A DNA stretch of 64,000 nucleotides from Bugula neritina (taxonomy: Eukaryota > Animalia > Bryozoa), in the NCBI GenBank assembly GCA_964035545.1, contig OZ037767.1, positions 32,132,628 to 32,196,627 of the forward strand, in the 5' to 3' direction. The translations under genes and the position numbers were made by a program. Position 1 is the stretch's first letter. Each line of letters begins with the position of its first letter. The notes beneath the pieces were generated by a model. That model saw nothing but the letters and a program-made list of their open reading frames with translations, made no database searches and was not told the origin of the DNA. This document shows positions 46,014 to 64,000 of this stretch, piece by piece.

Positions 46014-49000
46014 CTATAATATGTCTGTAGTGTTTATAAAACAAGGCGGGACTAAAGTGGCGGGATTTGCTAACGCTGCAATGGCTGAGTAAGTGGAGAT
46101 AACTCCCCCTACCAGTCCTATAGTTATCATAAACACAGCAAATATCTTCTCGTGCAGCTCTATCGATCTACAAACAGCGGGCAACTCCATTATCAGATAT
46201 ATATATATAAATATGTGTGTTACTAGAGAGTAGACAACTCTAGGTACGTTACTATAGAGTAGACAACTCTAGGTACGTTACTCACCTGCGCGGCCAGCCT
46301 CGGTTGTCCATAGAACAGAGTTTCCAGTAGAAGGCGCAGGGGAAGACGAAACTGAGTAGAGTTGTGGTGGACCCACCAATCAGAGAGAGAATAGGACCGA
46401 AATGCGGCACTAACTCGCCGACCAATAAGGCGAGAAGTGTGCACGCAGTTCTTGTTACAACCCGTTTCCACGTGAATCCTACAAATAGCATTCAACTGAC
46501 AAATGGCTATGAAGTTACCGTGGCAACCGAGCAAGTATATCCTGTTCAGAATGTATCCATGCTATAGACATGGCTGGTCTATTTAGTGTTTAGTAGAGAG
46601 TCATATTTCAGTGAGACAGTGAAGAGAGTCAACTCACGAGGGGGTACTTTGAACAGCTTCTCCACTCCTTGACACAAGGGGTTGATGACGATGGTGAATG
46701 CTGACAGCAGGTGTAGACAGATGAGAACCTGTACCAAGTAATACATCCAGGTGGGGTGGGCCTTGAGCGTGTCCAGTATGTTGTCACTCAGATTGCTGCC
46801 GAGCAGTGAATAGCCAACAGCAGCAACAGGAAGGTAGAGCACCATGAGGACTAGAAATATGCACAATGATTAGAGTGTGTGATAATGTGACCTTCTTATC
46901 AGCTGATAATGTGACCTTCTTATCAGCTGGTAGAGCAGATGGTAGAGCAGATGGTAGAGCAGATGGTAGAGCAGATGGTAGAGCAGCTGGTAGAGCAGAT
47001 GGTAGAGCAGATGGTAGAGCAGATGGTAGAGCAGATGATAGAGCAGCTGGTAGAGCAGATGGTAGAGCAGATGGTAGAGCAGATGGTAAAGCAGCTGGTA
47101 GAGCAGATGGTAAAGCAGATGGTAGAGCAGATGGTAGAGCAGCTGGTAGAGCAGATGGTAAAGCAGATGGTAGAGCAGATGGTAGAGCAGATGGTAGAGC
47201 AGCTGGTAGAGCAGATGGTAGAGCAGATGGTAGAGCAGATGGTAGAGCAGCTGGTAGAGCAGATGGTAAAGCAGATGGTAGAGCAGATGGTAGAGCAGCT
47301 GGTAGAGCAGATGGTAGAGCAGATGGTAGAGCAGCTGGTAAAGCAGCTGGTAGAGCAGATGGTAGAGCAGATGGTAGAGCAGCTGATAGAGCAGCTGGTA
47401 AAGCAGATGGTAGCACAGCTGATAGAACTGAACATCGTGTGACAAACTCATGTGACAAAACAGTCATATGTGAGTAAAGCAACTAGTTGGCTTTAAGATA
47501 ACAATACATACACAAGTTCAGTCATGTAGTTTAAAGAAAACAACTCCTGGATAAACTGAAGCTCCCAATAAATACCTGCGAAGCCCAAGAACACAGCCCG
47601 AGGGAAGTCTGTGGTGACTCCCATGTCGTGTTGAATTGTAGGGAAGGCGGAGGCGCCCCCGAAAGAGAAGAGTATTGTACCAAAGGCTAGAGCGAAGGAC
47701 TTCACGTCTATAGGCGTGTGAGTGACCTTGGAGGGCAGGTTGGTTGAGGAATATGAGGCTATGGCTGCTATGAGAAACCCGCAAGCTATGGCAGTGGCTA
47801 CTGTGGCTCCAACAGCTATTGGCCTGAAGGGAACACAAGTTGACACACACTGAGATACTACACTCTCACTCTCTGCTTATTGTTACTTGAATTGTTTGTC
47901 ACCGCAGAGGGCTAAGGCACTCTGTGTTGAGCTGATGAGGGGACAACTCCATACAACACCCTAACATATAGGACGAGGGAAAACTCACCAGAAGTCCTTT
48001 GGGGTGCCGAGCCACACGAAGGGGGTGAGGATGGCCACAAGAATGATCATCCAGAAGCAGGGAGAGAAACCAAGAGCCGGAACCTGCTGGAAGACGGCGC
48101 TAAAGTTGGTGGCTGCCAGCAGCATAAAGACCACCGAAACTCCAAAGAGGGTGAGGCTGACACAGACGGTCACTAAAATTCTGTGGAAATAGTGGTTGTG
48201 TATAGTGGTTATGTATAGTGGTTGTGTATAGTGGTTGTGTATAGTGGTTGTGTATAGTGGTTGTGTATAGTGGTTGTGTATAGTGGTTATGTATAGTGGT
48301 TGTGTAGAGTGGTTGTGTATAGTGGTTGTGTATAGTGGTTGTGTATAGTAGTTATGTATAGTGGTATAGTGGTTATGTATAGTGGTATAGTGGTTGTGTA
48401 TAGTGGTTGTGTATAGTGGTTGTGTATAGTGGTTGTGTATAGTGGTTTAGTGGTTACCTTCCAGCCCTACCGAATGCCTCAAAGCCGATGGCGGGGTAGG
48501 GGTCCCGGCACTGCTCCTGGTACTCCGGGAATCTCTCCTCCAGAATCAGCCAGCAACGTCCCAGTAGGATTCCACAACAACCAACCGCCACACAGCAGAA
48601 GGCAAGTATTACGAGTCCGATCCAGCCTATAAAGTATAACACAGCAACTATACAGTATAACAACTATACAGTATAACATACTATACAGTATAACATACTA
48701 TACAGTATAACATACTATACAGTATAACACCTATACAGTATAACGTCTATACAGTATAACATCTATACAGTATAACAACTATACAGTATAACATACTATA
48801 CAGTATAACATACTATACAGTATAACATACTATACAGTATAACACCTATACAGTATAACGTCTATACAGTATAACATCTATACAGTATAACAACTATACA
48901 GTATAACACCTATACAGTATAACACCTATACAGTATAACACCTATACAGTATAACACCTATACAGTATAACATACTATACAGTATAACATCTATACAGTA

Positions 49001-49904
49001 TAACACCTATACAGTATAACATACTATACAGTATAACATCTATACAGTATAACATCTATACAGTATAACAACTATACAGTATAACGTCTATACAGTATAA
49101 CGTCTATACAGTATAACGTCTATACAGTATAACAACTATACAGTATAACATATTACTAAACTGAGAGTAAAAGACTGAGAGTAATAGAAGGGGTACCTGT
49201 GTTCTCCACTGCCTTAGGTAGGGCAAGTACTCCGCTCCCCGCCATTTCTCCCACAATAAACACCATAGCAGTCCCAACAGTAAGTTTGTGAGCTGCATGA
49301 GCAGCATTGCTGCTGGAGCCACCATTCTTATCATTCAATAAAATACAAAGCCAAATTCAAATGTTGCTATGCGGAATCATATATCTGTTTACTATTGTCC
49401 ATTCAAGACGAATATATGAATGTGAAATATAGCTACTTTGTTTCCGTGAATAAATTTGAAAACACTATAGTATTAACATGCGTGTTATTGCAGTAACCTG
49501 CACCACTTGAATTAGGTGACAAAATAAGTAATTTAAGTTTTAACTCATAATTTTAGGCATTAAAATATAATAATTATCAAATTAGAAACAAATAACTCAT
49601 GAATTAAAATATTAAAAGTTAAAAAGCAAGTTATAATCGTAGTGATAGTACAAGTTTTCACTGTAAGTAAAACATTTAAAGTAGCTGTAATTGTAAAAAC
49701 TACACAAGTTAAAGCTCGGTTTTGTAATAGTAAAAGTATTAATATTATTAATTATCATTTTAACATTTCAAGCACCAAATTATTACTCACATCAACTGCT
49801 AAGAGAGCTTCTCTCTCCGACTCTGCCTCTCCCTTTAAAATGCTGGCATGCGGATACTCTCCACTGGGATTCCCTGAATCATCTTTCGACTCTCTAGCAC
49901 CCAT
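46014..49904 (-). CDS. Amino-acid transporter, Aa_trans (AVT1/SLC32-36-38-like) family, paralog B, 470 aa
   Basis: Exons 49904-49791, 49326-49197, 48626-48458, 48180-47989, 47823-47576, 46850-46638, 46478-46286, 46167-46014 (1413 nt). Motifs [47 protein letters not shown]-terminal acidic dileucine EREALL. Confidence 0.9.
46880..47425. repeat. 12-nt minisatellite (gcagatggtaga)
   Basis: About 42 copies in an intron of transporter B. Confidence 0.95.
48190..48455. repeat. 13-nt repeat (gtggttgtgtata)
   Basis: Tandem copies. Confidence 0.95.
48632..49152. repeat. 16-18-nt repeat (tatacagtataacatac)
   Basis: Tandem copies. Confidence 0.95.
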
Positions 49905-51703
49905 TACGATTATAATTGTGATTCAAATGAAATGGCTAATTAACCAATTCTAAAGACACCACAGACTAAGCGTTCTAGTTCTAATTGAATATCGAGTCCT
50001 GAGACTTAGTTACTACTTACTACTTTGTAACTGCAAAGTAGTCTAAACAAAGTAGACTTTCTTTTGTCTTACTTGTACGCTTAGAGTTACACTTACTGTT
50101 AGTTCAATTTTAAATTCAGAGTTATAATTTTATCTATTTTACCTTTACTTTTAAGTTTTACCTTTATCGTTGTTATATTTATCACAGAGATTTGTTTAAA
50201 TAATAATCATAATGTGCTTAAATTTTAGTTATCATCATACTTTCCTCATAAGTTCAGAATGAAAATAAACGTTGACTTATTACTAAAATTAAAGGGAAGT
50301 ATTACGAAGTTGAAACAAGCGTAACAATACTTGCGGCCATGTTTTTATCATGTGATTGAAAAGGGGGCGTGAAAATTGTAACATGCGTTTGTTCGCAATT
50401 CCTGGTTGCTAGGTATTAACTGCTCGTAACTTAAAACAAATAATAAGAACTTAGTCTATAATTGTTTCTCGTTGCCATTTATTTATCAATGTTATTTGTT
50501 AAACGCCCACTTTTGTAATTACGTCATATTATATTGGCTGCATACACAGGTCCTTTTATAATTATTGCTCTTTGTTTCATGAAATCAGGATTTTGGGTTA
50601 TAAAAGAGACATAAATTTATTGACATATTATATTAATGTCACTTAAAAGTTAGAATTTTAGGGTGAGAGCAGGCATGATACAATCATCTAAGCTTAACAA
50701 GTATTTTATTACAGCTTTTGTGAAACTCGGTTGTGAAGTGTTTAATATATTACCATATAGCTGTTATTTCAATGATATTTATTACTCATCCTATATATCC
50801 CTCTTCTATCACATGAATGTACCAGCAAATAAAATATAAATAAATTAACTTTTTAGATAAATATGTACACCTATGTCAATTTACATGCTTTGGTTTCTCA
50901 TTACAAGAGTTGATAGATGACACACTTAGGGTGACAGAGATTGCTAAGCGCTTGCAAGGTGCTTGTTAACAGCTCACTCTAGGCCATTCCCAGTCTTTCA
51001 TAAAGCTTTATCAACATTGCATTAAGGGGGAATATATCATAAATATTTACAATTACTTGATCTGAAGATTTTAGTTGCAAAATAGTATCTATGTTATTAA
51101 ACACAAATCACTCATACTTTTATATAATCTTGACAGTAATAATTTAAACATAATTTTTAAGTACCTTTCACAGACAAAATGTCATAAATTGCAAACAATG
51201 TTTTTAGTGAGTTGATTCTAGCAAAATCATTGAAGCACTTCTTTTTAAATAAAAAATATATATAATTAAATTATATATTTATTATTTAGCACAATTATAC
51301 TAAATAGTTGATAATATTATTACTCTATTTTCTGATATAGTATATATATTTATACTTTATTTTCTGATAGAGCATATATATTATTAGCACATTTCATAAC
51401 TACAGTGAACTATAGATAGATGCAGAGGCTGCTGTGTAACTTGAAGCTATAAGTAAAAGTATGGGTCAATAAGCAGTACAAGATCAGCACTTAAAACTAC
51501 TGAAGATAAATTAATAAACTAATTTTAATATTATTGTTCATAGCATAATTGTTTTGACTAAACATCTGCATGCATAAACTAATTTTGTTGATAATTGAAT
51601 TGTATTGTGGAAATGAGTTGACACAACAGACCCTTTCTGCTATGCAAGCAGTTTAGTTTTGTTCACAGCTAATGAAATGATAACAAAACAGAGATAATTG
51701 TAA

Positions 51704-51774
51704 ATGCAGCAGTCAAACTCTGATCATATTGTAAATGCTAGTGAAGAGTTACCACTCAGTGAATCTACATATAG
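51704..51774 (+). CDS. Candidate alternative first coding exon V1 (MQQSNSDHIVNASEELPLSESTY)
   Basis: ATG directly after an in-frame TAA; 23 codons +2 nt; donor AG|GTAGGG; upstream acceptor ttttgttcacag at 51668. Confidence 0.4.
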
Positions 51775-51899
51775 GTAGGGGATAATTTAACTTTATAATG
51801 TTACTGATTTTCTGAGCTGTTTTCATCTCCCTCAAAACGCTCTATCAAGTTAAATTACAAATGCTATGCTAGGAATATTCTAATTACTATATATCACTG

Positions 51900-52965
51900 T
51901 ATTATTATATTACTACCTTCTTAGATATACATATTACACATACTATATATTATTATATTACTACCTTCTTAGATATACATATTACACATACTATATATTA
52001 TTATATTACTACCTTCTTAGATATACACATTACAAATACTATATATTATTATATTACTACCTTCTTAGATATACATATTACACATACTATATATTATTAT
52101 ATTACTGTCTTCTTAGATATACATATTACACATACTATATATTATTATATTACTACCTTCTTAGATATACATATTACACATACTATATATTATTATATTA
52201 CTGCCTTCTTAGATATACATATTACACATACTATATATTATTATATTACTACCTTCTTAGATATACATATTACACATACTATATATTATTATATTACTAC
52301 CTTCTTAGATATACATATTACACATACTATATATTATTATATTACTACCTTCTTAGATATACATATTACACATACTATATATTATTATATTACTACCTTC
52401 TTAGATATACATATTACACATACTATATATTATTATACTACTATACTACCTTCTTAGATATACATATTACACATACTATATATTATCATATTACTACCTT
52501 CTTAGATATACATATTACACATACTATATATTATTATATTACTACCTTCTTAGATATACATATTACACATACTATATATTATTATATTACTGTCTTCTTA
52601 GATATACATATTACACATACTATATATTATTATATTACTACCTTCTTAGATATACATATTACACATACTATATATTATTATATTACTACCTTCTTAGATA
52701 TACACATTACACATACTATATATTATTATATTACTACCTTCTTAGATATACATATTACACATACTATATATTATTATATTACTACCTTCTTAGATATACA
52801 TATTACACATACTATATATTATTATATTACTACCTTCTTAGATATACACATTACACATACTATATATTATTATATTACTACCTTCTTAGATATACATATT
52901 ACACATACTATATATTATTATATTACTACCTTCTTAGATATACATATTACACATACTATATATTA
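51900..52965. repeat. 48-nt minisatellite, about 22 copies
   Basis: ctaccttcttagatatacatattacacatactatatattattatatta. Confidence 0.95.
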
Positions 52966-52983
52966 TTTCATAGACCAAAATCC

Positions 52984-53078
52984 ATGTCACTTTCATCCTT
53001 CGGGGCCACAAGAACATCTCCCAACTCAAGCAAAGGGAAGAAGATCTCATTCCATGCATTAAGCAGTTTGCTTGTGAA
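52984..53078 (+). CDS. Candidate alternative first coding exon V2 (MSLSSFGATRTSPNSSKGKKISFHALSSLLV)
   Basis: 31 codons +2 nt; donor AA|GTGAGT; acceptor atttcatag at 52973; GC-richer than flanks. Confidence 0.6.
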
Positions 53079-53104
53079 GTGAGTCAAATTTAACTGTTAG
53101 TTAG

Positions 53105-53390
53105 ATACACTGCCCAGTATATAAGTATATATTATAGTGTGTATATACATACATCTACTAGCATATAAGTATATAAGTATATATATTATAGTGTGTATAT
53201 ACATACATATACTAGACACACTGCCCAGTATATAAGTATATATTATAGTGTGTATATACATACATCTACTAGCATATAAGTATATAAGTATATATATTAT
53301 AGTGTGTATATACATACGTATACTAGCATATAAGCATATAAGTATATGAGTATATATTATAGTGTGTATATACACATACATCTACTAGCA
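53105..53390. repeat. Compound AT-rich repeat (about 55-60 nt units)
   Basis: Repeated tatattatagtgtgtatatacatacat...actag. Confidence 0.8.
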
Positions 53391-53810
53391 AAGACCTTGC
53401 GGTGGAATGATTGGGATTAAACTGTTTACAAGATGTAATAGGGTAATGAGCTAACACTTTTCATTATTTGTTTTCACTTCTCAAGACAAGTTTTCACCAC
53501 TTATAGTAAGTCTAAGATACTGGCAGTCAAACTGAGAGAGACTGCTGAGTAGAAATGTACACAAATCAGCAACTTAAGAGATCAGCTCCAACCAACTGGC
53601 AGCTCAGGTTATATTTAATCAGTTTATTTAGCTCCTTAAGTCTAATCTGTGCACATATAAATACATTTAGAGCAGCTGTCATAAATATATTGAAAGTTTT
53701 TATTTCTAAATTAAAACTGCAATAGTTATAAATCTTGGAATACAATTATTATATTCATTGAGCTGAGGGAAGATCTGAAACGATATCTGAGGATTTAACT
53801 TAGCTTTGCT

Positions 53811-54172
53811 ATGAGCTTTCACAACCGACCTCAAATCAAACCTAACAGATTTTGTGCAGCAGCAAAATCAGTTATCAAGTTGAAGAAAGAAAATGGAAAG
53901 ACAACTGGAAGTAAAAAATTGCTTGATTTTGACTCTCGTAAAACAGATTTGACAGGAATCAGCTTTAAAACTGCCTTCAACACCAAAGACTTGACTTTAT
54001 CTGCCAGAAACAACTTGACTCTACCTGCCAGAAACAACTTGACTCTACCTGCCAGAAACAACTTGACTTTACCTGCCAGAAACAACTTGACTTTACCTGA
54101 CAGAAACAACTTGACTCTACCTGCCAGAAACAACTACCGTAGTCCATCTCCAAGTTCTCTAAACCCTTCCAG
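53811..54172 (+). CDS. Candidate alternative first coding exon V3 (MSFHNRPQIKPNRF...; contains NNLTLPAR-type repeats)
   Basis: 120 codons +2 nt; donor CAG|GTGTGT; the ORF continues unspliced to 54284. Confidence 0.5.
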
Positions 54173-55088
54173 GTGTGTTGTAACTCTATCAGAAATAAAT
54201 TCAAAAGTTACCAAAGTTTTGAAACAAAATCTTGCGATTCTTGAGCTTGTCACTGACTGGTATTCAAAGTGCAACGTTGATTAATAATACTCCAATAACT
54301 TGTAGCCTTTTTATGTCATATGTCATTGACTTCTTCCATATCCTCATTGACCTCTTTAATCAGAGCAAATATCTTGTTTTAGTGATTATTCTGAGAGCCC
54401 TTTTAATGAACTGGTTTTAGTTTTAGTTAAAAATTCGTTTTATTTTTCATGCGCATATAACTGTAGTACAAGAGATCAAAGAATTATCCTCTCTTGACAC
54501 AGCTGAAAAATAACATCCATTGTATTTTAAAGTAGTTATATTCCCTATGCTATAATTATACATAAATCATTCTCCTTGAGTTGTATTTTTAAAGTCAAGA
54601 AGTATAGCAACCGACAGAATTAAATGTACCATATCAGTATTCTCTCTTGAAACACATTCTAGTCTTCATTTCCCATTCTTTGCAGCAAATCACTTGTAAG
54701 TCATGAGTATTATGTAGTTGAAGAGTTTAATGGATGGTATTGTGTATTGCTTGATGCCAAGGGTTGCTATGTTAACGCAATTCTGCTCCGACAGTTTTAG
54801 AGAATAAATTACAACATAAACACAGACTCTACAATAGAGTTCAATTATTGCTAAAGTAGGCACTGCCTTTATTCTATTGTGTAGAAAGCAAAATCCACAT
54901 TGTTTTAAGCTTTTAGCTCTACTTTGACTTTACACACTGCATTATCACACAGAATACAGCCACGACACTCTAGGGCAGGTGCTTTATATGCAAGGATAAT
55001 CTAGCTGCCTGTAAAACAGCCTAGCATGGTGAATTTTGCTTGAGTAGATAGCTATACCAATCAAATAGAGTATTAGAGACTTGTTGCT

Positions 55089-55159
55089 ATGACGACGCCA
55101 ACAACTAAGGGCAAGGACAAAGCGAGTAGGCTGTCCAGCGCAAGTCCAGCTGTGAAAGT
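55089..55159 (+). CDS. Candidate alternative first coding exon V4 (MTTPTTKGKDKASRLSSASPAVK)
   Basis: 23 codons +2 nt; donor GT|GTAAGT; in-frame TAG upstream at 55074-55076. Confidence 0.6.
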
Positions 55160-55384
55160 GTAAGTTGTAACATTTACAGACTTGGGATAATTTAAGTCAG
55201 ACTTGAGATACTTGAAATGGTCAGTTGTACTCAACTCTCAACTTGGCTTGCCTTGAGAATATGCTAGGTACAAACAAGTAGATGTGTGTTACTTATTACA
55301 CTCTCATAGGCATACATTGTGATATTACTTTTACATAATCAGCTCAACATCATATACGCTCTAGCAAATAATTCTACTATAACA

Positions 55385-56045
55385 CACTTTCATAGCACTC
55401 ACTTTCCTAGCACACACTCCTATAGCACACACTCCTATAGCACACACTCCTATAGCACACACTCCTATAGCATACACTTCTATAGCACACACTCCTATAG
55501 CACACACTCCTATAGCACACACTCCTATAGCACACACTCCTATAGCACACACTCCTATAGCACACACTCCTATAGCACACACTTCTATAGCACACACTCC
55601 TATAGCACACACTTCTATTGCATACACTCCTATAGCACACACTCCTATAGCAAATACTCTCATAGCACACACTTCTATAGCACACACTTCTATAGCACAC
55701 ACTCCTATAGCACACACTTCTATTGCATACACTCATATAGCACACACTCCTATAGCAAATACTCTCATAGCAAATACTCCTATAACACACAATCCTACAG
55801 CACACAATCCTATAGCACACACTCCTATAGCACACAATCCTACAGCACACAATCCTATAACACACACTTCTATAACACACACTCCTATAGCACACAATCC
55901 TATAGCACACACTTCTATAGCAAATACTCTCATAGCACACACTCCTATAGCACACACTTCTATAGCACACATTCCTATAGCACACACTTCTATAGCACAC
56001 ACTCCTATAGCACACACTTCTATAGCACACACTTCTATAGCACAA
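55385..56045. repeat. 15-nt minisatellite (cacacactcctatag)
   Basis: About 44 copies. Confidence 0.95.
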
Positions 56046-56457
56046 CCTCTTCTATTATAGCATAGACCTCTATAGCAAATAATTCGATAGCAAACACTAT
56101 TATAGTATATACTACTATAGCATAATATACTCCCATATAGCAAACACTTCCACTGTGATATGCTATGCCAATATAAATTCCCAGCTCACAAGTATAACTG
56201 TATAACCTAGCAATAACTTGGAGGGACACAATGGCTGGTCTGCTAATTCTTTCACCATAACAATTTATTAATTTGGCACCTTAAAGACAAATAAGATGTT
56301 TTCTATTTGTCTAATGAGCAATTGTTCACGTGTCTTTGAGTTTGGCAGTAACTCAGTGCAGATTTGTATTTCAACTAACATAACATTGCTGGGCGGACAT
56401 GTTTGGCAGCGTAAAGCTAGCACTACGAGTCTAACAGCTGTCTGCTTGAACGTCAGC

Positions 56458-56513
56458 ATGCAGGGCAGCTCTAAAAGGAGTTTCAGGGCAACAAGTTCTC
56501 TCATAGGCAAGCT
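56458..56513 (+). CDS. Candidate alternative first coding exon V5 (MQGSSKRSFRATSSLIGK)
   Basis: 18 codons +2 nt; AGCATG context; donor CT|GTAAGT; further in-frame ATGs upstream, from 56296. Confidence 0.55.
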
Positions 56514-57278
56514 GTAAGTCATTTTAAGTATTTAAAACATTATTTCTCTCATCATTATTTTTAGCAATGCTTAATTACCTGAACAGTGCTAGAACAGAAA
56601 CCATGAGTCATAGTCATAGTCTTTCATTATTTAATTAAACATAACAGTATATGACAGATCTTCAGCACCACCATTTCTATGCTGTCTGTCTGTGTGTCTA
56701 CTGTCTGTCTGTGTGTCTATAACTGTGTAAAGTACCAAGTATAGAGATTTTAATTATATACATATCTAAAGCATAAGGTGAGCAAATCTATAAATAACTG
56801 TGTGGCAACCTAATGCTACAGTTATGATTTATTTAAATTTCTAAATATTGTATTTCAATTAAAATTGATCAATATTTTATTCTGTATACTGTAATACGAG
56901 AGGCGATGGTGCCAGCCACTCGAAAACATAGCCACGTGTTTCAACTTAACGCAGATTGCGTCGCCTATAGCAAATGCCCTCACAGCTTTCAGATTTCGTT
57001 TTCTAAAAAAATAAAGCTAACGTTTTTCACGCATGATTACCAAGTTGCTATCCAATCCTTTGCTTGTTGTTTTTTGAAAAGTTTTCAATATAGAAATTGA
57101 TTCAGGAAACACAGCCCCGGGCGATCAGGAAAATCACTTCAAATTGTTTCAACATATCGCCAATAACTCTCACCCCAAAGAGCAAAGTTATTGAGCAGCC
57201 TAAAAGTATTCTTTTCTGATTACCCTCACCAGTCACTCGGTGATGTACTGCATAGTGTAGCAGAAAGAGAGATATAGC

Positions 57279-57403
57279 ATGTTTAAAAAGATTGCAGGAA
57301 AGGCGAGAGAAAGTGTCACACCAACTAAGGGTGCTGCCAGAGAAAGTGCTGGCCAATCACGGCACAGCAGCAGCGCAAAAGCTCTAATCAAAGTTCTGCA
57401 TGA
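57279..57403 (+). CDS. Candidate alternative first coding exon V6 (MFKKIAGKARESVTPTKGAARESAGQSRHSSSAKALIKVLH)
   Basis: 41 codons +2 nt; AGCATG context; donor GA|GTGAGT; in-frame TAG upstream at 57258-57260. Confidence 0.6.
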
Positions 57404-58250
57404 GTGAGTTTTAAACAGAGGTCTTGTTTAGAAACAGTTTAATTTTAATTTTACTTGTATTTCCTTCTTACTCTATCGTAGCTTTATTTATTACTGTCAC
57501 TTTATCTTTCACTGTTAAGGTGCTTGATTGCGTATTTAACCAACAAGGGAAGAGCAACTCAAAATTTTATTTAGAGTACAACTGTTTTAAACTTAAATCT
57601 TCACTTTGTTTCATAACATGGACATTATTCATTGTATTGTTAAGCAAGCTTTTACTCAGAATATTGACAGAATGCACACAAATATTTTACTTCCACACGG
57701 AGAAAATTGTACAATTAAATTACTTCAAGTTTTTCCTATAATTCTGAGTCATGCATGGTATAGTCATAGTCCTAGACATAGTATAGTAATGGTAAAGCGT
57801 AATATATATGACTCCACAAGTAGTTGATGCTGTCACTATCTACCAATACTTGTGGTAAATTGAGTTCTAATAAAGAAAAAGTCTTATAGTACATACAGTA
57901 CATGACTGAATGAGTGAGTGTTTAGCTAAACTTGTTAACAACGCTGATTGTAAAATGTACGATAAGAGAAAATAATATTATATATGTTCTATAACTCTTA
58001 TCATTTTGAATATAAGACTAAGTTGCTAAGGTATGCCACACGCTGTAGTCATTACGTTGAGGTATCTACTTGACTTCACCCAGTCTCATAGTCTGCAGTC
58101 TTTAGCACTAGTTGCTCTTTTCTCTCCTTCTAGTGGCGTCAGGCTTTTGCATATTTGGGTCCTCTCCTTGAATATTAAAAGTAATTATTGAGTTGAAAAT
58201 TGGAATCAGCTAAACGGGAAAAGAAGGTGTATAGAACTAAGAGAAGCAGC

Positions 58251-58456
58251 ATGTCTGGGCGTAAGTTAAAGGGACCGGTCAACACTCTTCTCTCCGCTGA
58301 GAATTCTATCTCCACCGCGAGCAGACGGCTCTCAGCTCCCATACGAGATAAACTCAGTGGGGGGAGAAAGCTGACTCATGCTGCCTTAACTGACCTTAGC
58401 AGTGTTGCTAGCTCTTTCTTGTCTCCTAGAGATTTGAGACTGACACCAAAGACTGG
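58251..58456 (+). CDS. Candidate alternative first coding exon V7 (MSGRKLKGPVNTLL...DLRLTPKT)
   Basis: 68 codons +2 nt; AGCATG context; donor GG|GTAGGT. A strong acceptor ctcttttctctccttctag at 58133 is followed by an in-frame TGA (58194-58196), i.e. a UTR+start exon. Confidence 0.6.
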
Positions 58457-58978
58457 GTAGGTTGATGCAACTAATTATTTCAAATTCCTTAAACAATATT
58501 GAGTGAATTGCTGAATACATAGTAAGAGGCCTTTAGTACACAGGCTATATCCCTGACCTACTAGGGAAGGTGATTGGGCTGAAGCTTACAGGATTATAGA
58601 GGGGGAGGTTTATGTTACTTGAGCACAACTCTTTCTCTCCTTCTCATACACTGTGTTATATTGTTTACTAGACTTGTGCAGTTCTACATAATGTATGCAG
58701 GATACATATTAACAGTTAACACAGACTCTAGCATAAAGTCTCTTTATCTCTCATCTCTTATTTACATACACTGAATCAACTGCCTAAAGTAATTCTGTCC
58801 TCTGAATAAAGATTAGGTTTAAGAAATGTAATCCTCTACCCAATATAATGTCAACCATTCAAGAAAGCTTTAGCTAGACATAGTTTATAGGTTTCTCTAA
58901 ACCTGCTGGCAGCATACATAAAGGCAGCTGCCGCAGACACATATAGTCATTTAGTCACGAGCGCAAAGTTTTAGTAGC

Positions 58979-59094
58979 ATGGCTAGTCCGCAGTCAAAAA
59001 GGTCTCGACTCAATGTTGTGGATGACTCATTGAGTAGAGGATCTCCTGTTGGCAGGTCTCGGACTACTAGTGCTGTGAGGTTGAACAGTGGAAG
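58979..59094 (+). CDS. Candidate alternative first coding exon V8 (MASPQSKRSRLNVVDDSLSRGSPVGRSRTTSAVRLNSG)
   Basis: 38 codons +2 nt; AGCATGG context; donor AAG|GTTTGA, with a second phase-2 GT 6 nt later. Confidence 0.55.
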
Positions 59095-59149
59095 GTTTGA
59101 GTTAGATATTTACTTAGTTTATATCTCTTACATCTAACACAGTATACTA

Positions 59150-59212
59150 TACTAACTGCTAACTAGGTAACTGCTAACTAGGTAACTGCTAACTAGGTAA
59201 CTGCTAACTAGG
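59150..59212. repeat. 15-nt repeat x4 (taactgctaactagg)
   Basis: Tandem copies. Confidence 0.85.
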
Positions 59213-60508
59213 GGCTGTAATACATTGCTTACCATTATAAAATAACTTAGTTTCTAGGAATATTATGTTTGTACGTGTTTTTTAAGGGTTAGCAAAACAA
59301 ATTTATGCCAAAGTGGTAATTTGCTTATGATAAATAATAACACTCAGGCTCAATGCTTAAATTTGTGATATTTTAGTAAAAATTCAAGTGTGGTAGCATC
59401 ATTTTCAATTTTAATTGGTGTTAAAATAATAATAATTTAATTACTTTAAAAACATTGTAGAAAACCTCTTGAATCGCCTAATTAACTTAATTCAACTTAG
59501 CACTCTCTTTTATAATATTTAAAAGTTTGCTGAGATCGAATGATATTTGGTTATCTGCTAATATATCCTTTGAGAACAAAAGCTAATCATAATATCCCGA
59601 CATTATGATATTTAGATGTTCCACATGCAAGATTACTGTTGTTGCTCCCTGCTCCCTGCTCTCGGCAGTGGCTGGTCATGGTGACATTATATAGAATGTT
59701 ATTTAAAGCTATATATTTTATAGAGCAGACAACCCTTAGACAGAAATACATACTACCATCACGCTAGTAGCGTTTATCCTTCACTGTTGCTAAAACATAT
59801 TTTTACTTCAATTTGCTAAACCCATCTTTGGTCTATATAGCCCAGTTCTTATTCACCCCACAATCTACACTCTATTGAGTTCAAAGCTGACATAACTATA
59901 AGCTGCCAAGTAGAAGGCAGCACTTCTCTTCTCGCTGTCCACCTGCAGCTAATACTTAGATCATTATTAAAGTCTATAAAGTATTGATTGCTGTGAATGT
60001 TTTATCAAACAATTCGCTGCTAAAAGCTACATGTGGTGTTGCTATGTTCTAATTCTCCAATACTTATAAAACAAACAAATATCCCTCTTAAGAAAACACT
60101 CTTTCCATTCATTAGTCTACAATTTCTTCAAATCAACAATTAACATGTGAATGAGTAACTAATTTCTCACCAATTAGACGTGAAGGCAGCAGCTCACTTC
60201 ACATAAGACTCTCTCTAAGAAAGCAGCAGAAAAGATAAAACTGCCGCAATATTTCCTTTCGCTTGAGGAAAGTTAATTCCCGGTGCTGATATCCCTGGGA
60301 AGTGGTGAACTCTTGACCTTACAAGCAAGTTCAGTCTTATATCAGGACAGAGCAGGGAGTCAATCATCAGAACAGAGTGACTGGAGCAAATCCAGTGGCT
60401 GATTGGTTATAACCTGAAACTGGAGAGCAGCGTTCTAATTGGTTACGTGACAGGAAGTAGCTAAGGGACAGGAAATAGTTAAGTGACAGGAAGTAGCTAA
60501 AGGACAGA

Positions 60509-60639
60509 ATGGATGCGCTGCCTCCAGCCAGTCAGAGACAAGTAACCAAAGACAAACACCGCGGATCTATCAGCAGACCAGCAGCAGACCTGAATCAAAG
60601 AAGAGACAGTTTGGATAAATACAACAAGTCTAAAGACAG
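60509..60639 (+). CDS. Candidate alternative first coding exon V9 (MDALPPASQRQVTKDKHRGSISRPAADLNQRRDSLDKYNKSKD)
   Basis: 43 codons +2 nt; donor CAG|GTCAAG or AAG|GTAGTT at 60646, both phase 2; in-frame TAG upstream at 60494-60496. Confidence 0.55.
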
Positions 60640-60827
60640 GTCAAGGTAGTTAATGGACCAATCAAGTGTCTTCTACATTCAGTTCAGGTTATCCAACCAA
60701 TACCCATGTTCTTTTACAAAACTCTCCATATTGGTCAGGCATTGGGTTATGGAATTTTTCTGATATTTGTTTGCTTTCTTGGTCTTTTAATCATTTCATG
60801 GCAGATTAAACATTTAGATGCTTTAAT

Positions 60828-61036
60828 TTTGTTTTAGTATTGCTATAGGTTTCCTCAAGGGGGGGGTTATGTTTTAGTATTGCTATAGGTCCCCTCAAGG
60901 GGGGGGTTATGTTTTAGTATTGCTATAGGTCCCCTCAAGGGGAGGGGTTATGTTTTAGTATTGCTATAGGTCCCCTCAAGGGGAGGGGGGTTATGTTTTA
61001 GTATTGCTATAGGTCCCCTCAAGGGGAGGGGGGGTT
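60828..61036. repeat. 40-44-nt repeat x5 with G-tracts
   Basis: gttttagtattgctataggtcccctcaaggg(g/a)nttat. Confidence 0.9.
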
Positions 61037-61310
61037 AATCCCTTGTTGATTGCTATGATTTTTCTTAGCTTCTATACCTCCTTAAATTTGAATTTTGCAG
61101 TGAAATCAAAGCACTTCTATTATTGTTAGTCCTCTAGCATTAGAGATTAAATCCTCAGACAGCGTCCCTCTCTTCCCCTTTCACCTCTTTAGCATGGTAT
61201 TGTAGCTTTGGTTTAGTGACTTTACCTCATTGAGGATGTACCTATATCTCACGCAGGTTGTGTTTCCCCATCACATATTCTATGATATACTCTATGGTAG
61301 ATTATAGAGT

Positions 61311-61760
61311 GGTGTCATCTCACTTAGACGCTTCCCAGTTAGACGCTATTTATTTATTTTGGTGCAATATGTATTTTATGTGCAATTTATTTTAATATCA
61401 TTGAAATAAATGTATGTTTAAATAAACTTGGATCAATTGTTTGCTATTTAGTACATAAATAAATTTTTTTGATCTGCATTAACTTATTAATTTTGCATAT
61501 TCTATACTTTTTGTTGTTTGAAAAAAATATTCCGTTAACAAATATTCATTAAAAATAATGTCTATTATTAATGTATTACTGTTTTTTGCCCCACACAAAT
61601 CTGCAAAAATTAGGCTATTATTCCAGATAATTTTTATTAGCTATTATAGCTATTATAAGCATGTATTAGCTATTTAGCAATCAACACACCAGTTATAATG
61701 TAAAAAATAGCGTCTAACTGGGAAGTGTCTAAGTAGGAAGTGTCTATCTGGGATGAAACC
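61311..61760. mobile_element. Non-autonomous DNA transposon (MITE), 450 bp
   Basis: Left end ggtgtcatctcacttagacgcttcccagttagacgctatt is the imperfect inverse of right end aatagcgtctaactgggaagtgtctaagt...tgggatgaaacc. Flanked by near-identical direct repeats tatagagt (61303-61310) and catagagt (61761-61768). AT-rich non-coding interior. Confidence 0.75.
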
Positions 61761-62186
61761 CATAGAGTATATTATATTACATGTCGTATTTACATAACTT
61801 GTGTATATAGTAGACAGATAGGCTGACATACACACATAGTTGAGACTTTGACTAAGTTCCGTATTGTTGTTGGGGGGGGGGGGTATTTGATGAGCCCCAT
61901 GACTGTGATTACAAAATAATCAATACTCTTCAGACAATAAGCTTCTGTATAGAAACATAGATGCAATTTTTGATTGATATTATCTATTGTTTCATCAATA
62001 CGTGCTGATTGTTGGCCAGTTCAGTGTTAGCGTGGCAAGTTACAGTCACCTGGATACTGCCGCACTCATCAGATAGAAGGGTTTATACGACAGGAGTAGA
62101 TGAGTGACGGCCACCGGGTTATTCTACTGCTTGCATACAGGAAGTAAACGAGTTTACTAAAACAACTGACAGACTTGCTTTGAGCC

Positions 62187-62515
62187 ATGAGTGCACATCC
62201 CAGAAGTGTGACACAGATCGGGCGTTACCAAAACGCCCGCAAGAAAAGCAGAGATGAAGTGTTTCACCGACTAAGCAGATGGTACCCCTCTGTCTCGGAC
62301 ACCCCTGAGGAGGCCATCCTTCTGATGGTGAATGGAGGCAGCAGTCTCTCTGGAGCCGGCAGCACTCTGCCACCAAAGTCCCGAGTTGATCAGTACGTGC
62401 TGAGGACAGAGTCCAGAGTACAGTCAGTCTTAGAGACTCCGGACGTTATTTCAGAGTCACTCACTAAACCAGAAGGAGGAAAAATATCTAAGCTATTGCA
62501 GTTTAGTATGAAAGA
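62187..62515 (+). CDS. Candidate alternative first coding exon V10 (MSAHPRSVTQIGRYQ...KLLQFSMK)
   Basis: 109 codons +2 nt; GCCATG context; in-frame TGA at 62181-62183; donor GA|GTGAGC. Confidence 0.6.
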
Positions 62516-63323
62516 GTGAGCTACTTAAATTTATATACTAACAGCAAGTCTATAAGCTGAGTATAATAGGCAACACTGAGTTGTAAAATGTAGTTCACAT
62601 CAAATAACTTTATGGGTATGTTTACGTGCTATGCACTTGACTCTGTGAAGAAAGCCATAACTTGTAAACACAGTCAGTATTCTCACGTATTATATGTTAG
62701 GTTAGGCGGGACAATTTAGCTGTTGGTGTTGAAATTTGACTTTGATCACTACAGTTATTAACTAGGGTAACTGCATCTTGAAGCAATAAACTTTTGAACT
62801 GATTGTTATATTGGTGGAATAAGTAGAATTTACTATAAAAAATTATATGAAACAATAATTATCTTGTTTGAGCTATAAATAATGTGTGATTTGGCTTACC
62901 CATCCTGAACGTATCTGTATATAACACTGACAGTTTGGCAATTACTACATGCTTATTTTGTTGTAATTAAATTAGCAAACAAGCTATCAACCACTAACTA
63001 TTTTTAGTCATGTCTATTTCCACGTTTAAAGGGGGTAAAAGAACATTAAATAAAATAGTCCAGCGCCATAGTTTTCACAAAACTTCAAAATTATTGTTGG
63101 CTTCGACGAACTTAGGTGAAGTATTTTTGCTCAATTAAGAGTTGTGCACACTTGATTGTACTACAAAATGCGCATGCGTAAAATCAGTTGTATAAAATAT
63201 TACTGGGCAACGGATGAAATGGACACGAGATTCATCGTGCTATGCTAGTAATCTTTTTGAACAACTTAAATTTGTGTTCACAAAATTTTTCTTTATAATT
63301 GATAACACTTGATGGTTTTGAAT

Positions 63324-63385
63324 ATGCCTGCCAAAACTCCCAAAAGAGTAGAATCTAGAATGAATTCTGCAGCTCGAGGGCATGA
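63324..63385 (+). CDS. Candidate alternative first coding exon V11 (MPAKTPKRVESRMNSAARGH)
   Basis: 20 codons +2 nt; donor GA|GTAAGC. Confidence 0.5.
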
Positions 63386-64000
63386 GTAAGCATTAATTCA
63401 TAATTGACAACCAGTCACTGTCAGAACTTAAGTGAACGTAAACCGTAAACGGCGTAAACGTAGAGGTAGCATTCGATTCTAACTTCCAAGACCATAGTTA
63501 TACTTACAGTAATTGTTATTGTGGTTGTGTGAATGAGTATCGGAATGATTGGGCTGCTTATTTTTTCTGTGATGAAATTTAACTTCAAGTGCGAGTCACT
63601 TTTAGTTTTAGTGTGAGGAATTTTAATTTAAAAATGACACTCATTCCGAGCTGGCCGACAACTAACAATCACCGTGCCATTGTGATAGCTAAACTTACGG
63701 TAATAATTGTTATAAGTTATTTTCTAATTCAGTAATTTTAGTTCTCAGGGCTAAAATTTGCTGCAATATAAAAATTTAGTTTTTGCTCAAGATCTAGATT
63801 AGGTTGTTACTCTTATCTATGATTATGATAAGGTTATTGTCATTATGATTATGTAGTTGAATAGATAGCTGATCAGCTCGAAGATAACCCTAATTTAGCT
63901 AGAATAGACTTTAGAATAAGAATAATTAGTACGTCAATGTATGATCGTGTGTTTTTAACTCCTAAGAGCTCTACAAATCTCATTACTGCCTACTCACCTC

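Follow-up and report, generated by a model that had tools for sequence, protein, structure and literature searches.

The splicing of alternative first exons to a common protein body is a known design, and the closest described system to the one considered here is plectin (PLEC). In that gene, about twelve alternative first exons are spliced into a common exon 2, and the resulting N-terminal tails dictate localisation and expression profile (PMC8468861). The clustered protocadherins and UGT1A are organized as tandem units of a promoter and a first exon, with shared constant exons and a single splice phase. Whole functional domains are encoded by their variable exons, which are large and paralogous duplicates of one another. 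In Drosophila hydra, a male-germline-linked gene, tandem alternative first exons have repeats on their 3' side (PMC1904467). Here we describe an array of candidate first exons in front of the androglobin gene (ADGB) of the bryozoan Bugula neritina. The array occupies the last part of a 64,000-nt stretch of DNA (to be referred to as the window; G000:C3:32132628-32196627 of a 216.0-Mb assembly) and continues a short distance beyond its end. The chromosome-level genome of this species, of 216.00 Mb, has been published (PMC11480708).

The overall organization of the Bugula locus is similar to that of plectin, with many short, dissimilar first exons, most of them with their own ATG, one exon 2 and one large protein. 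The gene and the phylum are different, however, and the plectin isoforms are experimentally established and have targeting roles, whereas three junctions are shown here. In comparison to the protocadherins and UGT1A, the exons are short (19-121 codons) and mutually dissimilar, and the product of one of them (V11, see below) is predicted to be disordered. In hydra, a de novo gene, a single exon has been duplicated recently to give the array, while the exons of Bugula ADGB are unrelated in sequence and belong to an ancient gene. Repeats 3' of the exons are found in both, as minisatellites follow several of the Bugula donors. Androglobin is an old and enigmatic chimeric globin-protease that is tied to cilia and sperm. 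The mammalian gene also encodes a calpain-like domain and androglobin domains, but one promoter with distal enhancers has been described for it (PMC7949040). The androglobin papers searched for these terms mention neither alternative first exons nor N-terminal isoforms, and the design is new for androglobin.

We put the probability at roughly 85% that this is an alternative first-exon array of the single ADGB gene, each exon being spliced to exon 2 at position 64758 (window numbering is continued beyond 64000). By this mechanism, the 13 kb between a divergent transporter gene and ADGB exon 2 would hold the alternative first exons. Each of them would comprise a separate leader, an ATG and a brief coding stretch, rich in Ser, Arg and Lys and for the most part disordered, that ends at a phase-2 5' splice site, and none would possess a usable 3' splice site. 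The choice of promoter would set which first exon heads the transcript. The cap-proximal donor would then join the exon 2 acceptor, and this would be the only productive splice because the first exons lack acceptors; those located downstream would be removed as intron. The outcome would be one androglobin body with interchangeable N-termini.

The features of the array are listed below, with the donor hexamer given for each exon. Each exon line begins at its ATG. L029 is a contig of the 2020 draft genome of B. neritina (GCA_010799875.2; PMC7576161) and represents a sibling lineage; X1 and X2 are RNA runs (see below).

51704-51774, + strand: V1, candidate first exon, doubtful; open reading frame (ORF) with donor GTAGGG, T at position -3
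52984-53078, + strand: V2, candidate first exon, not conserved; ORF with donor GTGAGT, T at position -3
53811-54172, + strand: V3, first exon of 121 codons; ATG, frame, length and donor GTGTGT kept in L029
55089-55159, + strand: V4, first exon; peptide identical in L029, donor GTAAGT kept
56458-56513, + strand: V5, first exon; peptide identical in L029, donor GTAAGT kept
57279-57403, + strand: V6, first exon; frame and donor GTGAGT kept in L029
58251-58456, + strand: V7, first exon; ATG and donor GTAGGT kept in L029
58857-58978, + strand: 5' untranslated leader of the V8 transcript; colinear RNA contig (X2)
58979-59094, + strand: V8, first exon, confirmed by RNA; donor GTTTGA, joint to exon 2 in X1 and X2
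59616-59680, + strand: V9, rejected candidate; donor GTGACA, stop at the junction, frameshift in L029
60449-60507, + strand: tandem repeat of 18 nt x 3.3 with ETS-like GGAA cores, directly 5' of the V10 ATG
60509-60645, + strand: V10, first exon; peptide identical in L029, donor GTAGTT kept
62187-62515, + strand: V11, first exon of 110 residues; donor GTGAGC, supported by L029 and distant homologues, predicted disordered
63169-63211, + strand: conserved promoter-like block before V12, TGCGCATGCGT and ATTACTGGGCAAC; kept in L029
63324-63385, + strand: V12, first exon, confirmed by RNA; donor GTAAGC, joint to exon 2, peptide identical in L029

Each of the 12 exons in this list consists of n codons plus 2 nt and is followed by GT. 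In-frame stops are located 3-57 nt upstream of six of the ATGs (at 51701, 55074, 57258, 58194, 60494 and 62181), and four exons (V5-V8) have their ATG in the context AGCATG. All these features, which had been given in a preliminary description of the window, were reproduced. A 13th unit, V13, lies outside the window. Its ATG is located at 64393, and it ends at 64478 with the donor GATGA|GTAAGA. Position -3 is a purine in 10 of the 10 supported exons (V3-V8 and V10-V13) and T in V9, as in V1 and V2. The GC content of the exons is 0.40-0.54, compared to 0.21-0.45 in their flanks. Ser (16%), Leu, Arg and Lys are abundant in the peptides. The peptides had been described as dissimilar to each other, and no pairwise similarity beyond composition is found among the 13 (mean z 0.07 over 78 pairs). 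Ancient duplication of the exons therefore cannot be demonstrated.

Splicing to exon 2 is observed for three of the exons. X1 and X2 are Logan contigs of two runs of one sample, labelled metagenomic RNA-Seq of a 'symbiont metagenome'. Their status as RNA is a guess of the library type, and the argument rests on exact GT..AG joints that are absent from the DNA run X3. They contain 6-7% of the words of the 53.8-63.4k region, as against 93% in X3. The contigs of the runs were mapped on a segment (L008) that corresponds to window positions 58860-64859. The V12 joint (L008 4526 to 5899, 63385 to 64758 in the window) has GT..AG ends and is found in both X1 and X2, but not in X3. The V8 joint (L008 232 to 5897), with one extra G, has the same distribution among the three runs. 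If a single A>G difference is allowed, the joint reads GGG AG|AGCGG and corresponds exactly to 59094|64758. The V13 joint (L008 5616 to 5899) is found in X2 only and is also absent from X3. It has GGA between its two sides, and with a T>G difference it reads GAG GA|AGCGG, corresponding to 64478|64758. The A>G and T>G differences match the sibling-lineage genome, and therefore the RNA comes from the sibling lineage. V8 joins exon 2 directly, with V10-V13 skipped. The serial joining of donors in one transcript, an outcome considered in the preliminary description, was not seen. The junction between exon 2 and exon 3 was observed as well, as a loose contig end at the exon 2 donor that reads into exon 3.

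There is also a low-depth contig from the RNA runs near 63726 (L008 4867), in the intron between V12 and V13; it differs from the window by a 1-nt deletion. Its source may be unspliced RNA, an extended V13 leader or carry-over of DNA.

Exon 2 is located at 64758-64839 (G000:C3:32197385-32197466), 758 nt beyond the end of the window, in agreement with the earlier expectation of a constant phase-2 exon beyond 64000. Its acceptor is tgtttgtttcag, and the first nucleotide of the exon completes the split codon. There is no in-frame ATG in exon 2, as read by hand from the sequence, and therefore translation must start in a first exon. In Pfam searches with the exons queried singly, exons further downstream on the + strand match Androglobin_IV, with 39 and 37.5 bits (cut-off 27), and Peptidase_C2, with 24.0 bits (cut-off 23.8). 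A match to Androglobin_V is below the threshold (19.1 bits, cut-off 27), and an exon that appears IQ-like by eye (L003:9608-9886) has no Pfam match. The genome contains only one Androglobin_IV locus. Judged from these domain matches, the constant part is the single androglobin gene of the genome.

L029 is colinear with 51.7-65.1k, with about 88% identity in non-coding DNA, and therefore the divergence is enough for a test of constraint. The ATG, the open frame of n codons plus 2 nt, and the GT donor are kept for ten exons, V3-V8 and V10-V13. For these exons pooled, the proportion of non-synonymous differences (pN) is 0.031 and that of synonymous differences (pS) is 0.146, which corresponds to a ratio of non-synonymous to synonymous substitution rates (dN/dS) of 0.20 (Fisher p 1.7e-13). 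The six exons V4-V7, V10 and V11, for which there is no RNA joint, have a pN/pS of 0.019/0.176 (p 7e-15). Only two indels, of 3 and 15 nt, are present in 1620 nt of exon sequence, compared to 22 expected (P 6e-8). Outside of the exons there are 13.7 indels per kb, and 28% of them are multiples of three. Positions +1 to +6 of the donors are unchanged in the ten exons (0/60; P ~0.003).

The individual exons differ in their degree of constraint. V4 has two synonymous changes and an identical peptide, and V10 has four synonymous and no non-synonymous changes. The ratio of synonymous to non-synonymous changes is six to two for V6 and 15 to three for V11, the latter also with one in-frame 3-nt indel. 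The pN/pS ratio is 0.07 for V8 and 0.31 for V7, where L029 has, as the sole indel, a deletion of 15 nt that keeps the frame. From this conservation, V3-V7, V10 and V11 would also splice to exon 2. Of the preliminary description's claim that the donors splice directly to one acceptor, the part concerning V8, V12 and V13 is established by RNA and the part concerning these seven exons is supported by conservation; likewise, of the proposed set of more than 10 isoforms, 3 are shown and about ten are supported. The dN/dS of 0.20, together with the purely in-frame indels and an exon 2 that has no ATG, is indirect evidence that the variable part is read into protein and changes the product.

The original count of 11-12 functional exons was partly correct, as ten units are kept in L029 and three of those proposed fare less well. 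V9 was rejected as a functional exon. Its junction with exon 2 would produce a TG|A stop, and there is a frame-breaking 16-nt deletion in L029. V2 is not conserved, with ATA in place of ATG and a frame-breaking 1-nt deletion in L029. In L029, the 3' portion of V1 forms a tandem repeat unit and the ATG lies outside of the alignment, so that V1 is doubtful as a first exon. An additional ATG-initiated ORF is located at 63533-63612, with 26 codons, a hydrophobic product and a phase-2 GTGAGG donor at its end. The ATG, frame and donor of this ORF are kept in L029, and its RNA depth is zero in the X1/X2 contigs. It may be a chance occurrence or a 14th first exon.

The frequency of such units by phase and strand, proposed earlier as a check, was computed against a background of 400 kb-strand from the same chromosome. 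A generic donor matrix was used for all sequences, with which absolute scores are rough; the contrasts by strand, phase and background all rest on this one matrix. On the + strand of 51.7-64.9k there are 49 ATG-initiated ORFs of at least 18 codons, and donor-like sites are found in phases 2, 0 and 1 for 11, 3 and 1 of them, respectively. The corresponding numbers are 3, 2 and 1 on the - strand of the array region, and 96, 103 and 98 among the 1564 ORFs of the background, where the phases are equal. The excess of phase 2 on the + strand has a binomial p of 1.5e-4, and phases 0 and 1 and the - strand are not equally populated. For ORFs with a donor overlapping the stop, nine units are present on the + strand and 2.1 are expected (Poisson p 3e-4).

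Conservation beyond the sibling lineage was found for V11. This exon is single-copy in the genome, and its ORF is 96-97% identical to the NCBI hypothetical protein EB796_015770 of B. neritina, which the draft annotation gives as a stand-alone protein of 111 residues encoded by an unspliced ORF. An exhaustive HMMER search with V11 finds five proteins of 100-126 residues, with 43-58% identity, on short Logan/ENA contigs that are assumed to be bryozoan. The homologues share the motifs MSA..., RKKS.D and YHR.SRWYPS(I/V)SDTPEE. In all the DNA examined (P0002, P0003, P0004, P0006 and the L040/L041 copies, but not P0005), a phase-2 GTAAG donor is located at the exact end of the homologous frame. One of these contigs, L043, also carries a V12-like exon, at a distance of about 807 nt downstream of the V11-like exon, compared to 808 nt in the window. 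Its 21 residues are 76% identical to V12 over their full length, and its donor is TGA|GTGAGT. Moreover, GCATGCGT and ATTACTGGGCAAC precede the V12-like exon on L043/L044 at the same distance as before V12. Order, spacing, donors and the promoter-like block of V12 are shared with L043, and therefore the V11-V12 pair is old. By this comparison of contigs, V11 and V12 predate the split from a more distant relative.

A scan of metagenomes with the V11 family added two further short contigs and one false match, L042 (SKEP01000012.1). The latter was rejected as a relative, as it is a bacterial TnpB/OrfB-like transposase in which SRWYPS is shared by chance. There was no usable match among the ESM Atlas look-alikes of V11. 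A word-based protein search found no homologue for V3 and V7, and for V11 only the unspliced ORF of the draft annotation. None of these three peptides has a Pfam domain. The AlphaFold model of V11, calculated with the family alignment, has no secondary structure and a mean predicted local distance difference test score (pLDDT) of 56, with 64-71 over the conserved motif. The V peptides thus look like disordered tails with short linear motifs, as far as this model can indicate.

A different ORF is present on L040 (585-806) and L041 (1005-1226), about 1.5 kb upstream of the V11-like exon and identical in the two contigs. It begins with ATG, has 73 Ser/Arg/Gly-rich codons and ends at a phase-2 AAG|GTAATC donor. 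Its similarity to V10 is not significant for the L040 copy. This ORF hints that the relatives have extra first exons of their own.

Promoter-like features are found before several of the exons. The 250 nt upstream of V4, V5, V6, V8, V11, V12 and V13 are 94-98% identical to L029 (V4, 95%; V5, 98%; V6, 94%). In comparison, the sequence preceding the internal exon 2 has 84% identity, and the aligned introns that follow supported donors have 56-91%. The block before V12 contains an NRF1-like site, TGCGCATGCGT, and an X-box-like site, ATTACTGGGCAAC, both kept in L029. The tandem repeat before V10 has three ETS-like GGAA-core units, two of which are kept in L029, and it could have a role as promoter. 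L029 does not preserve the ETS site before V11. At the V4 ATG there is an overlapping X-box-like site. GTTGCYA half-sites appear enriched by eye, and loose X-box matches have the background frequency; the strict palindromic RFX X-box is absent from the array region. Among the X-box sites considered in the array, the V12 site alone is supported, by its conservation. Mammalian ADGB is controlled by the ciliogenesis factors FOXJ1 and RFX2 (PMC7949040), and the V12 X-box-like site would fit such control by analogy. From the upstream conservation and the differences in the motifs, each first exon may have its own promoter.

Several observations weigh against an array in which all ten exons serve ADGB. 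The RNA joints cover V8, V12 and V13 only, from one sample of the sibling lineage, and in that sample there is no RNA depth in X1/X2 for V10 and V11 (nor for the rejected V9). The pN/pS of V3 is 0.076/0.096 (about 0.8), which is near neutral, with no indel in 362 nt; the peptide sequence of V3 appears to be barely constrained. The counts of the ETS, NRF1 and X-box-like motifs are those expected by chance, their position and conservation alone being suggestive.

V3 also holds a coding repeat of 24 nt x 6 (ARNNLTLP) at 53989-54135. The copy number of this repeat is the same in the sibling lineage, despite the almost neutral evolution of the peptide.

An alternative explanation is that only the exons nearest to exon 2 (V8, V12, V13 and perhaps V11) are first exons of ADGB, while the conserved ORFs farther away (V3-V7 and V10) are something else, such as small independent genes or first exons of unannotated transcripts that end short of exon 2. 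It accommodates the lack of RNA contigs for V10 and V11 and the near neutrality of V3. The word share of 0.06-0.07 in the RNA runs over 53.8-63.4k is about accounted for by V8, V12 and a repeat, and the draft annotation has V11 as a stand-alone protein. On the other hand, a single RNA sample cannot show that V10 and V11 are silent. All these exons have conserved GT donors, unchanged in the sibling lineage, in the sole phase compatible with exon 2, and the excess of phase 2 is specific to one strand. The donors of V3 and V8 create no stop, and V8 is proven to splice; the end of the ORF is therefore not the selected feature. The homologues of V11 elsewhere end exactly at a GTAAG donor and not at varied stops. 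We regard this explanation as unlikely.

The units could instead be symmetric phase-2/2 cassette exons of one long transcript, as the preliminary description had allowed, with acceptors at the AG dinucleotides found 1-10 nt before several of the ATGs. Four exons do have AG|C before the ATG, in a position that preserves the frame. However, X2 has a 793-nt contig that follows the genome without interruption from 58857, across the V8 ATG, up to the donor, so that no splice is used at the AG before this ATG and the leader is unspliced over at least 119 nt. Likewise, the V13 leader is unspliced over at least 190 nt, with a 276-nt contig extending over 64203-64475, ahead of the V13 donor. The sequences before the AGs are purine-rich and have no pyrimidine tracts, the direct joint of V8 to exon 2 passes over V10-V13, and six of the exons have the upstream in-frame stops described above. 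Cassette exons are thus very improbable.

That the pattern is due to chance, with random ORFs ending in G+TRA mimicking phase-2 donors in AT-rich DNA (a GTRA donor in phase 2 always makes a stop, and the background has about 0.14 such units per kb-strand), can be practically dismissed for the array as a whole, as the number of units is more than four times that expected, the phase and strand bias is clear, and purifying selection, indel avoidance and the RNA joints contradict it; chance likely explains V9 and possibly V1 and V2, and is refuted for the ten supported exons.

With the array read as alternative first exons of ADGB, the product of its single copy must begin with one of some ten N-terminal peptides that have been maintained by selection. 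The N-terminus is thereby indicated as a functional handle, through which targeting, regulation or turnover could be controlled. By analogy with plectin (PMC8468861), the peptides may be cell-type- or compartment-specific targeting or regulatory tails of a ciliary/flagellar protein, with possible roles in phospho-regulation or stability. They would provide a natural isoform series in an animal whose ciliated cells are of many distinct types. In current annotation such exons are separated from their gene as orphan 'hypothetical proteins', as in the case of V11 and EB796_015770, and further short orphan ORFs with G+TRA at their end may likewise be first exons that have gone unrecognised. A broader and rather doubtful proposal is that the array is a conserved bryozoan device by which ADGB is tagged in each cell type through distinct promoters, as part of a genome-wide first-exon habit of Bugula. 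In this proposal, V12 would have an RFX/X-box-like promoter and V10 and V11 would have ETS-like sites, and unrelated, basic, de novo-like first coding exons would be built before constant exons. If true, this lineage would have a route of its own to diverse protein N-termini.

On the other side of the array is an Aa_trans amino-acid transporter gene (window 46200-49400, - strand), which is divergent from the array and ends near 49.3k. The array therefore fills a divergent intergenic interval. An intron of the transporter gene, at 46.8-47.5k, contains a long repeat with a period of 12 nt that is open in all six frames.

Minisatellites are located at 51900-52967, 53102-53390, 55382-56131, 59153-59212 and 60830-61031, with units of 48, 54/111, 15, 15 and 40 nt, respectively. 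They start 25-225 nt after the donors of V1, V2, V4, V8 and V10, and they differ from each other, each of these introns having its own array at its start. Similar arrays after exons 2 and 3 (64867-65175 and approximately 66100-66300) are suggested by repetitive ORF translations. An element of about 510 nt at 61273-61784 resembles a miniature inverted-repeat transposable element, with nested terminal inverted repeats of 25 and 33 nt. Its contig depth in the DNA run is about 100x the single-copy level, and the contigs of the RNA runs cover the element as well.

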